Of a stretch of DNA of 64,000 bases, positions 12,201 to 15,200 are shown piece after piece. The stretch is from Macrostomum lignano. Lineage: Eukaryota. The stretch is taken from NCBI GenBank assembly GCA_002269645.1, contig NIVC01000172.1:210558-274557 (forward strand), read 5' to 3'. The position numbers and the translations under genes were made by a program. The notes under the pieces were generated by a model. It saw only the letters and a list, made by a program, of their open reading frames with translations. It was not told where the DNA came from and did no database searches. Position 1 is the stretch's first letter. The number at the start of each line of letters is the position of its first letter.

Positions 12201-15200
12201 AATGCCCCGGCCAGCACGCCAGCCCCGTCGTAGTCGAGCCGCAGGCAGTGCAGCGCCAGGGCATAGAACTCGGCTGTCGGCATTTTAACCCGACGCTCGC
12301 CGTCTGCGTCGATGTCGTTGCCGTCGTTAATTTCGTTGATGTCGTTGTCCTCTGGGGAGCGGACAATGCGAGCGGCCCGGGCCCAGTCGACCTGAATGGA
12401 TATATTGTCCATTAGTTAGTTAGTTAGTTAGTTAGTTAGTTAGTTAGTTAGTTAGTTAGTTAGTTAGTTAGTTAGTTAGTTAGTCAGTTAGTTAGTTAGT
12501 TAGTTAGTTAGTTAGTCAGTTAGTTAGTGAGTTAGTTAGTTAGTTGGTTAGTTAGTTAGTTAGTTAGTTAGTTAGTTAGTTAGTTAGTCAGTTAGTTAGT
12601 TAGTTAGTTAGTTAGTCAGTTAGTTAGTTAGTTAGTTAGTTAGTTGGTTGGTTAGTTAGTTAGTTAGTTAGTTAGTTAGTGAGTTAGTTAGTTAGTTATT
12701 TAGTTAGTTAGTTAGTTAGTTAGTTTGTTAGTTAGTTAGTTAGTTAGTTAGTTAGTTAGTTAGTTAGTTAGTTAGTTAGTTAGTTAGTTAGTTAGTTAGT
12801 TAGTTAGTTAGTTAGTTAGTTAGTTAGTTAGTTAGTTAGTTAGTTAGTTAGTTAGTTAGTTAGTCAGTTAGTTAGTTAGTTAGTTAGTTAGTCAGTTAGT
12901 TAGTTAGTTAGTTAGTTAGTTAGTTAGTTAGTTAGTTAGTTAGTTAGTTAGTTAGTTAGTTAGTTACTTTCAACCCAACAAGCAAAGCAAATTCGACAGA
13001 CCAGCAGGCGCAGCAGCGGCAGGCGGTGCGGGCAGCTGCTGTATAGGCTGAGCAGGTAGCGGGTCTTCTCCAGCCCGATCGTGTTCATGCTGATGTCGCA
13101 GTCCATCGAGTCGTCGCTCTCAACACTCAGCTGACAGCGGATGAGCGGCACCATGCGGTTCTCAGCCAGCAGCTCCACCTTGTTGGTGGCCACCCTGTCG
13201 AGAGCGGGCGACACCGCATTGCGCAGCCAGTGCCGCTGAAGCTCCGCCGCTGACAGGCCGGACAGCTCCGGCTGCTGAGCTTCCCTCGACGCTGTCACGC
13301 ACAAATCGACATCGGAGCTGACCGCGTCACAAAGGAAGACGGAGGCCGAGCCGTAGACGGCGACGTCCAGCAACCGGTGGTTTCCGTCGCTTCTCTTCAC
13401 AGTGGCGTCGATAGCCGAGCGGATGAGGGCGGCGGCGGTGTCGGCCCGGCCGACGGCTTCGCTCAGCGCCGGCAGCGACTCGCGCAGGCTGGCGATCGCC
13501 GACATGCCGACGTCGAGTTGAAGATTCCGCTCGGCACTGGGAGCGGCAGCTGATTTGGTCAGCAGGTCGCCGATGTCGCAAAGAATGTCGGCGACAATCC
13601 AGGGGAAGCTGAGGCCGAGAGGGCGTCGACGGCGAGCCTCGGCCGAGTCCTCCAGGTCGACATCGTAGCTGACGTCGTCGGAAGCCTCGGCGTCGCGGGC
13701 GTGCCGGGCGGCCACGAAGTACCAGGCGGCCGCCTTGGCCCGCTGCCGGTCCGCGGCGTCCTGGCAGCCGCTGCCGCCTCCGCCGCTGTACAACTCCGGG
13801 TCGGATTCGAACTCGCGACGGTACCTGAGCAGAGGATGCCGCAGAATTGGGAATTGTAGTACAGCGGATATTATATAAAACATACTGATTGTATTGCCAT
13901 CGATTCATGAAACTTTTGAGTTAAGGTTTATTTATCTTAAAGCGCTTTAACTCTACTCTACTAGCAGTAGACATATAGAAAGTTACATGTATAAACATTA
14001 ATAAATAATAAATTTTATTGACAAGTCTACTAATAGCGGAAATACGAGATTCTAGGGAAGTGGGAAAGAGGGGGAGAGGGAAAGAGGGGGAGAGGGGAAG
14101 AGGGGAAGAGGGGGAGAGGGGGAGAGGGGAAGAGGGGGAGAGGGGAAGAGGGGGAGAGGAGGAGAGGGGGAGAGGGGAAGAGGGGGGAGAGGGGAAGGGG
14201 GAGAGGGAAGAGGGAAGAGGGGAAAAGGGGGAGAGGGGAAGAATGGAAGAGGGGAACAGGGGAAGAAGAGGAAGAGAGGAAGAAGGGAAGAGGGGAAGAG
14301 GGGAAGTGAGCATATGAGGCAGAGCCGAGGTGACAAGATCCAAGCCAAGCTCAGACTTGCCTGGCAAACAGGGCATCCCGCGCCTCTCGCAGTCGCCTCT
14401 GCGCAGAGCCAAGGTCTGAGCGCAGAGTGGAGTGCCATCTCATGCTCCTGGCCAGGGCCAGCTCCCTCTCGCTGGCCAGGCCCCACTGGCCCAGCAGGGC
14501 CCGAACATCCATCTGGTAGCGGGCCAGTTCGATTCGAGCTTTCGAGGCGAATTTCTCCCAGCCAGGCCAGGAGAGAATCGGGTTGTTCGCAGCGTCAGGC
14601 TCGGTGCCTGTTGGCTGCCCCACCGCCTGCTCAAGGAGGTCCCAGTCCAGGGCGTAGGTGAGGCAGCGCCGGTACAGCTGCCCCAGCAGCTTCTCAGACT
14701 TATAAGTCTTTTTGGCCGGCTTCTCCATGAAGTCCGGGTAGCCTTCATCCTGCACTTTCTCCAGGGCTTTCTTTGGAACCTGGTAGGTGGAAGACAGCCG
14801 CGTTTCAGTGCATAACCCACAGAACACCCCAGTGCATAACCCACAGAACACCCCAGTGCATAACCCACAGAACACCTCAGTGCATAACCCACAGAACACC
14901 CCAGTGCATAACCCACAGAACACCCCAGTGCATAACCCACAGAACACCCCAGTGCTTAACCCACAGAACACCCCAGTGCATAACCCACAGAACACCCCAG
15001 TGCTTAACCCACAGAACACCCCAGTGCATAACCCACAGAACACCCCAGTGCTTAACCCACAGAACACCTCAGTGCATAACCCACAGAACACCTCAGTGCA
15101 TAACCCACAGAACACCCCAGTGCTTAACCCACAGAACACCCCATTGCATAACCCACAGAACACCCACCTGCGGCACAATGCCAGTCTTTGGAAAGTCCAC

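Follow-up and report, generated by a model that had tools for sequence, protein, structure and literature searches.

A Macrostomum lignano gene predicted to join helicase, RNA-dependent RNA polymerase and terminal nucleotidyltransferase in one chain

In the flatworm Macrostomum lignano, the C-terminus of an RdRP (RNA-dependent RNA polymerase) is physically fused to a nucleotidyltransferase (NTase), and both lie within a single open exon. The exon belongs to a 64,000-nucleotide (nt) stretch of contig NIVC01000172.1 (assembly GCA_002269645.1, positions 210,558 to 274,557 of the forward strand), called the window here, in whose numbering all coordinates are given. It is probably exon 16 of a 19-exon gene encoding one protein of 2,803 amino acids (aa). 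From N- to C-terminus, the model contains a domain with four conserved cysteines (4-Cys), a Dicer/RIG-I-type superfamily 2 (SF2) helicase, an RdRP, a predicted terminal ribonucleotidyl transferase (TENT), a KH-like module, and a conserved tail. Judged by this domain content, the protein would act as a single-chain counterpart of RdRP complexes.

The junction lies in a minus-strand open reading frame (ORF) of 307 aa, 12960-13883. A preliminary description of the same DNA had reported that this ORF runs from RdRP motifs into NTase motifs without a stop. The reading holds: the frame is open, all quoted motif strings are present, and the AG/GT bounds match an exon at 13824-13002. The acceptor AG occupies 13826-13825 and the donor GT 13001-13000; the first base of the exon is codon position 3, the last codon is complete, and there are no stops inside. 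The exon and its motifs are as follows.

13824-13002, minus strand: exon 16, motifs of the RdRP C-terminal head, a linker of about 15 residues, and the catalytic (palm) domain of the NTase, which carries GS, DxD, and third Asp
13736-13713, minus strand: KAAAWYFV motif
13613-13572, minus strand: LSFPW..CDI motif
13358-13341, minus strand: VYGSAS motif
13316-13296, minus strand: SDVDLCV motif
13103-13083, minus strand: DCDISMN motif

Could the two halves be separate genes? No stop lies between them, and we therefore rejected this possibility. A hidden in-frame intron inside ORF 12960-13883 was set aside as irrelevant, as the fusion would stay intact. The earlier claim that the fusion does not depend on a splice model is borne out by the one open exon and by the same junction in single ORFs of P0001, P0003, and P0004, which come from independent assemblies and other organisms. 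The "short helical linker" of that description needs amending. The linker from ...ILCDI to the NTase domain is indeed short (~15 residues), but the helix belongs to the NTase domain, which opens with 42 helical residues in an AlphaFold2 model.

The full gene model was built on the minus strand by chaining open segments through frame-consistent AG/GT sites. It has 19 exons over ~26.8 kb, starts with the ATG at 35979, and closes with a stop codon at 9205-9203; the coding sequence of 8,412 nt (2,803 aa) contains no internal stops. All splice sites are AG/GT save one GC donor at 14360-14359 (strong context AG/GCAAGT, the slash marking the splice site) after exon 15. This GC-AG intron is required, as it keeps the RdRP C-terminal motifs in frame. 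The remaining exons are listed below.

35979-35609, minus strand: exon 1, start codon and 4-Cys domain (aa 1-124); donor AG/GTGAGA
35236-34876, minus strand: exon 2, helicase motifs Q, I (PTGSGKT, 35007-34987), and Ia
29886-29224, minus strand: exon 3, helicase motif II (DECH, 29712-29701) and insertion domain; Pfam DEAD/ResIII
28421-28134, minus strand: exon 4, beginning of helicase domain 2
27146-26781, minus strand: exon 5, Helicase_C with motif VI (QSRGRAR, 26972-26952); Pfam Helicase_C, E=6.9e-17
23327-22493 and 22235-21839, minus strand: exons 6-7, region between helicase and RdRP core; frame-consistent AG/GT, collinear with the paralog P0239
21163-20800, 19638-19455, 18730-18565, and 17869-17581, minus strand: exons 8-11, RdRP core
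16923-16714, 16264-16127, 15557-15168 (DLDGD), and 14779-14361 (GC donor), minus strand: exons 12-15, RdRP core
12391-11369, minus strand: exon 17, NTase central domain followed by the KH-like module (RYFMDGAS); covered by alignment, AlphaFold, and Foldseek
10775-10251, minus strand: exon 18, conserved tail and a low-complexity Pro/Gly stretch; AG/GT and in frame, donor choice less certain
9802-9203, minus strand: exon 19, conserved C-terminal region (NWVHATV) and stop codon

Over aa 1-2787, our model and the M. lignano paralog A0A1I8H5L0 (3,058 aa), whose public gene model is complete, run collinear at 38.9% identity. Residue 1 of our model aligns with residue 1 of the Hydra, dinoflagellate, acoel, and other homologs. 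At the other end, the motifs of exons 18 and 19 are conserved in P0003, and exon 18 is collinear with P0239. Two UniProt entries from M. lignano, A0A1I8JQW4 (P0002) and A0A1I8FC89 (P0009), share long near-identical exon stretches with the gene and represent this locus or its homeolog. Both are frame-garbled and terminate in the RdRP domain, so the NTase, KH-like module, and tail are missing from them. Across the gene (9203-35979), G+C content is 65.4% in exons and 47.6% in introns, the latter being rich in microsatellites and minisatellites such as the (TTAG)n array at ~12400-12960 directly downstream of exon 16.

Where in the protein does an ordinary RdRP end? The Pfam profile PF05183 matches the spliced model in one stretch, aa 1124-1712, covering profile positions 1-581/582 with 406.6 bits (E=2.5e-121). 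The catalytic DxDGD motif is present as DLDGD at aa 1568-1572 (15488-15474). The protein is thus predicted to contain a complete eukaryotic cellular RdRP of the RDR family. PF26253 (RdRP_head) gave no match in local Pfam scans, and for this reason the C-terminal motifs were compared directly with those of canonical RDRs. In the latter, the AWY and LSFPWIV(G/A)DIL motifs lie ~10-70 residues from the C-terminus: in a Vicia RDR2-like protein of 1120 residues the motif occupies 1099-1113, and in a Phascolomyces RdRP of 1125 residues it ends at 1058. The alignment runs through SFPW in 62 of 107 canonical RDR matches, plant and mucoralean RDRs among them. Because these motifs form the extreme C-terminus of canonical RDRs, the window protein continues where ordinary RDRs end.

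What follows is the NTase. Searched with the ORF alone, PF22600 (the MTPAP-like palm domain) scores 30.4 bits (E=4.8e-7) against a curated cut-off of 27. We aligned the NTase domains of 19 homologous family members (alignment A2) and used this alignment for profile searches and for the AlphaFold2 model. PF22600 matches all 19 members, with a best E of 1.1e-14, and PF01909 matches five. The invariant positions of A2 are G-S, S-D-x-D, and the third D, plus P, G, K, G, F, and W; the catalytic residues in the protein are G1972, S1973 (of YGS), D1985, D1987, and D2057, and all are invariant in A2. Against the PDB, the A2 profile retrieves CutA (2.1e-11), Tailor (6.7e-10), GLD-2 (1.1e-9), TUT7 (1.3e-9), and Cid1 (1.8e-8), together with trypanosome TUTases, mtPAP, URT1, and Trf4. 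The alignment to CutA extends through the FFR motif of the central domain. The AlphaFold2 model has a mean predicted local distance difference test score (pLDDT) of 84.9 and a predicted template modeling score (pTM) of 0.84. Its best 50 Foldseek matches in the PDB are all TENTs, namely Cid1, TUT7, CutA, GLD-2, TUT1, mtPAP, RET1, and Tailor, with E values from 3.5e-7 over 280-390 aligned columns.

Profile and structure searches thus agree with the earlier assignment of 13002-13420 plus exon 17 to the Pol-beta NTase fold, and place it in the Cid1/TUT/GLD-2/CutA group. The searches and the model support the view that the domain is a Cid1/TUT/GLD-2-type TENT with the two-domain fold and intact catalytic motifs, for which tailing activity is predicted. 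It shares the hG[GS], DxD, and third-Asp motifs with Cid1, TUT4/7, Tailor, GLD-2, and CutA, which give its best profile and fold matches. It differs from solved TENTs in its low identity to them (13-17%), in lacking a recognizable recognition motif or histidine, in its ~42-residue N-terminal helix, and in being embedded in a protein of 2,803 aa.

The third enzyme is the helicase, which the preliminary description had overlooked, and with it the three-enzyme nature of the protein. Pfam places DEAD/ResIII at aa 179-342 and Helicase_C at aa 513-629 of the spliced model, and the PTGSGKT, DECH, and QSRGRAR motifs are intact. The best PDB matches are DCL1 (2.9e-44), an ancestral Dicer helicase, LGP2, RIG-I, and MDA5. 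By motif and profile, this is a Dicer/RIG-I-type (RIG-I-like receptor, RLR) SF2 helicase.

Two further modules flank the enzymes. The N-terminal 4-Cys domain (~120 aa) aligns from residue 1 in 33 family proteins, and C3, C8, C61, C64, G69, G75, and P76 do not vary across 16 sequences. Its profile weakly resembles those of MsrB, Mis18, and Yippee (E=0.007-0.45), which tentatively suggests a zinc-binding-like domain, of a fold class that also takes in the RIG-I C-terminal domain. Downstream of the NTase, 180 aa encoded by the second half of exon 17 (11907-11369, minus strand) are conserved in 84 proteins. The first half of this module is predicted by AlphaFold to adopt a beta-alpha-alpha-beta-beta-alpha arrangement, the type-I KH topology, and its Foldseek matches are nearly all KH domains (FMRP, FUBP1, PCBP2, and hnRNP K; TM to target ~0.7, E ~0.02). 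A sequence-level search of the PDB gave no relative of the module. The canonical GXXG loop is missing, and an invariant RYF..G motif follows the KH-like fold within a low-confidence stretch of the model. We call the module KH-like on account of the modeled topology and the Foldseek E of ~0.02.

Is this fusion peculiar to M. lignano? A word-indexed search with exon 16 alone returned one close relative, P0001 (a Logan contig), which is 50% identical and has the same junction in one ORF; the same kind of search with A2 returned P0001 again and nothing else. Two ENA proteins, P0003 (1,410 aa) and P0004 (1,353 aa), carry RdRP and NTase in single ORFs. At the P0004 locus (L003, 1121-8451 of ENA ERZ27295596), nothing but GT/GC-AG introns of 60-70 nt lies between the helicase, RdRP-NTase, and tail ORFs. 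Searched exhaustively with HMMER, the C-terminal 736 aa retrieve 116 proteins, of which many are 2,200-2,900 aa long with the match at about residue 1600-2000. Named animal members are the M. lignano paralog, Hydra vulgaris LOC105846402 (P0128), the sponge Oopsacas, and the acoel Convolutriloba. Outside animals, we detected the dinoflagellates Prorocentrum, Polarella, and Effrenium, the dictyostelid Acytostelium (P0223), the chytrid Physocladia, the charophyte Mesotaenium, and the diplonemid Sulcionema. Pfam finds DEAD, Helicase_C, RdRP, and PF22600 in that order in six named homologs, with PF22600 at E=2e-11 to 2e-10 in four; it follows the RdRP in Acytostelium P0223 (E=8e-11) and Hydra P0128 (E=2.2e-10).

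The predicted three-enzyme architecture is conserved across very distant eukaryotes. Because the junction recurs in many of them, the fusion is neither chimeric nor peculiar to flatworms. This wide spread, already present uncharacterized in public protein sets, had also escaped the preliminary description. At L003 and L004, the same intron-split gene occurs in a eukaryote from two metagenome assemblies, for which a prokaryotic gene caller produced four adjacent ORFs (DEAD, Helicase_C, RdRP plus NTase, and tail). The Physocladia obscura protein P0203 (KAJ3137940.1) was automatically named "Interferon-induced helicase C domain-containing protein 1" (MDA5) from its helicase, which shows how automatic naming can mislead in this family.

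The helicase-RdRP family itself is known. A DEAD-Helicase_C-RdRP structure has been described in Dictyostelium, oomycetes, Hydra, and Nematostella with no mention of an NTase (Bollmann et al. 2016, PMC4791657). The Dictyostelium rrp genes are said to contain "both functional domains" in a paper from which the word nucleotidyltransferase is absent (Wiegand et al., PMC3950715), and helicase or NTase domains are not discussed by Pinzon et al. 2019 (PMC6396948). The fusions of Dictyostelium RrpA/B/C, Hydra, Nematostella, and peronosporomycete oomycetes combine the same Dicer-related DEAD/Helicase_C with a full PF05183 RdRP in one polypeptide, those of RrpA-C, oomycetes, and Nematostella by published description. 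Acytostelium P0223 and Hydra P0128 are direct homologs of the window protein over the C-terminal query. The published descriptions recognize two functional domains and leave the C-terminal NTase, the 4-Cys domain, and the KH-like module unmentioned; the window gene is the flatworm member, with 19 exons. We found no description of the triple fusion in the literature searched, of which coverage was incomplete, so an earlier mention is possible. The conserved C-terminal TENT thus seems to be undescribed, though it is present in public sequences.

RdRP-based amplification of small RNAs repeatedly needs a helicase and a nucleotidyltransferase, and the complexes known so far have several subunits and are difficult to reconstitute. 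The RNA-directed RNA polymerase complex (RDRC) of S. pombe consists of the RdRP Rdp1, the helicase Hrr1, and the NTase Cid12. It has the same three activities as predicted for the window protein, namely an RdRP, an SF2 helicase, and a Cid1-family nucleotidyltransferase, distributed over three polypeptides; the window protein has them in one chain, plus the 4-Cys domain, KH-like module, and tail. In Tetrahymena RDRCs, Rdr1 is associated with the uridylyltransferase Rdn1 or Rdn2, and template tailing influences RdRP initiation. There, too, a dedicated TENT partners the RdRP, but as a separate subunit and without a fused helicase. In C. elegans, the poly(UG) polymerase RDE-3/MUT-2 marks RNA fragments that are copied by the RdRPs RRF-1 and EGO-1, and the helicase DRH-3 belongs to the RdRP module. 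The window protein resembles this system in combining an NTase, an RdRP, and a RIG-I/Dicer-family helicase; it differs in that the C. elegans proteins are separate, and UG specificity finds no support here. An RDRC is made of separate associated subunits, whereas here the three enzymes are covalently fused. The protein is therefore filed as one that would work like an RDRC, not as a member of that class. The PDB matches of its NTase do not discriminate among RDE-3/MUT-2, Cid12, and Rdn1.

How might such a protein work? We envisage, as the likeliest reading, a single-chain version of the Rdp1-Hrr1-Cid12, Rdr1-Rdn1/2, and RRF-1/EGO-1 plus DRH-3 plus RDE-3 complexes. The helicase would engage or remodel RNA, the RdRP would copy it, and the TENT, ~15 residues past the RdRP head, would add untemplated nucleotides to the 3' end handled by the polymerase. 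As the target we favor, at about even odds, the template's 3' end, which tailing would mark or at which it would shape initiation, as has been reported for Tetrahymena Rdn1 and C. elegans RDE-3. In the main alternative, the TENT would act after the polymerase and tail its product, the resulting double-stranded RNA, or the small RNAs, so that they are stabilized, tagged for decay, or given ends suited to Dicer or Argonaute loading. This is rather unlikely in our estimate, yet one argument for it is that the TENT follows the RdRP head on the C-terminal side after just ~15 linker residues. Its closest structural relatives, Tailor, TUT7, Cid1, and CutA, count on the same side, as these enzymes tail finished RNAs such as miRNA precursors and mRNAs. 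The NTases associated with RdRPs (Tetrahymena Rdn1, C. elegans RDE-3, and S. pombe Cid12) have been described mostly as working on templates or precursors, which speaks against product tailing. The sequence discriminates neither way between template and product.

Several points weigh against reading the locus as a single-chain, RDRC-like machine. The splicing of exons 1-15 and 17-19 was inferred from the DNA. In the full-length protein, PF22600 scores 26.0 bits, marginally below its cut-off of 27. A single-sequence phmmer search of the PDB with the NTase region found nothing even at E<=10, and the domain is therefore divergent; the Foldseek TM-scores of its model are low (0.4-0.55). PAP_assoc (PF03828) is absent from every Pfam scan, whether of the ORF, the full protein, or the 19 homologs, and no motif revealing a preference for U, A, or another nucleotide is identifiable in the NTase. 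Nucleotide specificity is thus as unreadable from the sequence as the preliminary description had stated. These absences lower confidence in a specific subfamily, not in the fold. It is domain content, and not a shown orthologous relation of the NTase with Cid12, Rdn1, or RDE-3, that suggests the analogy to RDRCs. Finally, a sense-oriented long terminal repeat (LTR) retrotransposon in intron 2 could disturb expression of this gene copy.

Divergence on this scale, the empty single-sequence search, a central domain with no PAP_assoc match, and the lack of a recognizable nucleotide-recognition motif are what one might cite for a pseudoenzyme, a catalytically dead scaffold that holds RNA or partner proteins. 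In a survey of 98 family domains, however, retention is 88/88 for GS, 87/87 for the first Asp, 86/87 for the second, and 87/87 for the third, in homologs from animals, fungi, amoebozoans, alveolates, a charophyte, and a euglenozoan. Such retention is the pattern expected from purifying selection on catalysis; it argues for a working active site and makes a dead domain very improbable. We judge equally remote the proposal that the domain is a signaling NTase of the OAS/cGAS/CD-NTase kind, making a nucleotide second messenger in response to RNA sensed through the RIG-I-like helicase instead of tailing RNA. The Pol-beta superfamily fold is the same, the fused helicase is RIG-I/MDA5-like, and a weak PDB match (7x4f, E=0.19) points to a cyclic dipyrimidine nucleotide synthase. 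Yet the significant profile and fold matches are all RNA-tailing TENTs, OAS, cGAS, and CD-NTases account for 0 of the top 50 Foldseek matches, and a domain covalently fused to an RdRP would be expected to act on RNA 3' ends. A junction created by assembly chimerism, by pseudogene decay, or by chance read-through of adjacent genes could be suspected from the garbled UniProt models A0A1I8JQW4 and A0A1I8FC89, which stop before the NTase, and from the repeat-rich surroundings, but it is scarcely credible given an 8.4-kb coding sequence with no internal stop and every catalytic motif intact, and given the same junction in P0001 from an independent Logan assembly, P0003/P0004 from ENA contigs, the M. 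lignano paralog, Hydra RefSeq proteins, and many others.

What would a single-chain helicase-RdRP-TENT protein mean? A natural single chain bears on the question of how RdRP, helicase, and NTase activities are physically coupled. It provides a Rosetta-stone argument that the three activities act on the same RNA, in an arrangement conserved from dictyostelids to animals, and would offer a defined object for cryo-electron microscopy and biochemistry. A third enzyme may have gone unnoticed in proteins as well studied as Dictyostelium RrpA-C. The novelty is one of recognition, not of data, for the sequences are already public with automatic Pfam matches.

In M. lignano, four RdRPs have been reported, and no RDE-3 ortholog was found in flatworms (Fontenla et al. 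2017, PMC5594548). Given the latter result, the fused domain may fill the RDE-3 role in M. lignano, and it is a candidate for the "missing" RDE-3-like function in an organism in which RNA interference works. The chain is found in animals, fungi, amoebozoans, alveolates, streptophytes, and euglenozoans. We suggest, tentatively and with more doubt than conviction, that the helicase-RdRP-TENT(-KH) chain could be the ancestral eukaryotic RdRP machine, of which the RDRCs of fission yeast, ciliates, and nematodes would be later split versions. If so, RdRP initiation or the choice of template would depend mechanistically on the built-in TENT. That would make sense of the TENT that RdRPs everywhere recruit and of the apparent lack of a separate RDE-3 in flatworms.

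The retrotransposon in intron 2 lies outside the protein.

30121-34752, minus strand, in the sense orientation of the gene: LTR retrotransposon of the Ty3/gypsy type, intron 2

The element is young; its LTRs (30121-30298 and 34575-34752) are 99% identical and it carries protease-reverse transcriptase (PR-RT), RNase H, and integrase ORFs. Elsewhere in the window, and consistent with an animal genome, we noted a two-exon rhodopsin-family G-protein-coupled receptor gene (3846-5218, minus strand), an amino-acid permease gene (43387-44256, plus strand), an RNase H/RT-like retroelement fragment (37542-38411, plus strand), and a fragment of GNT-I (GlcNAc-transferase I; 53860-54285, minus strand).

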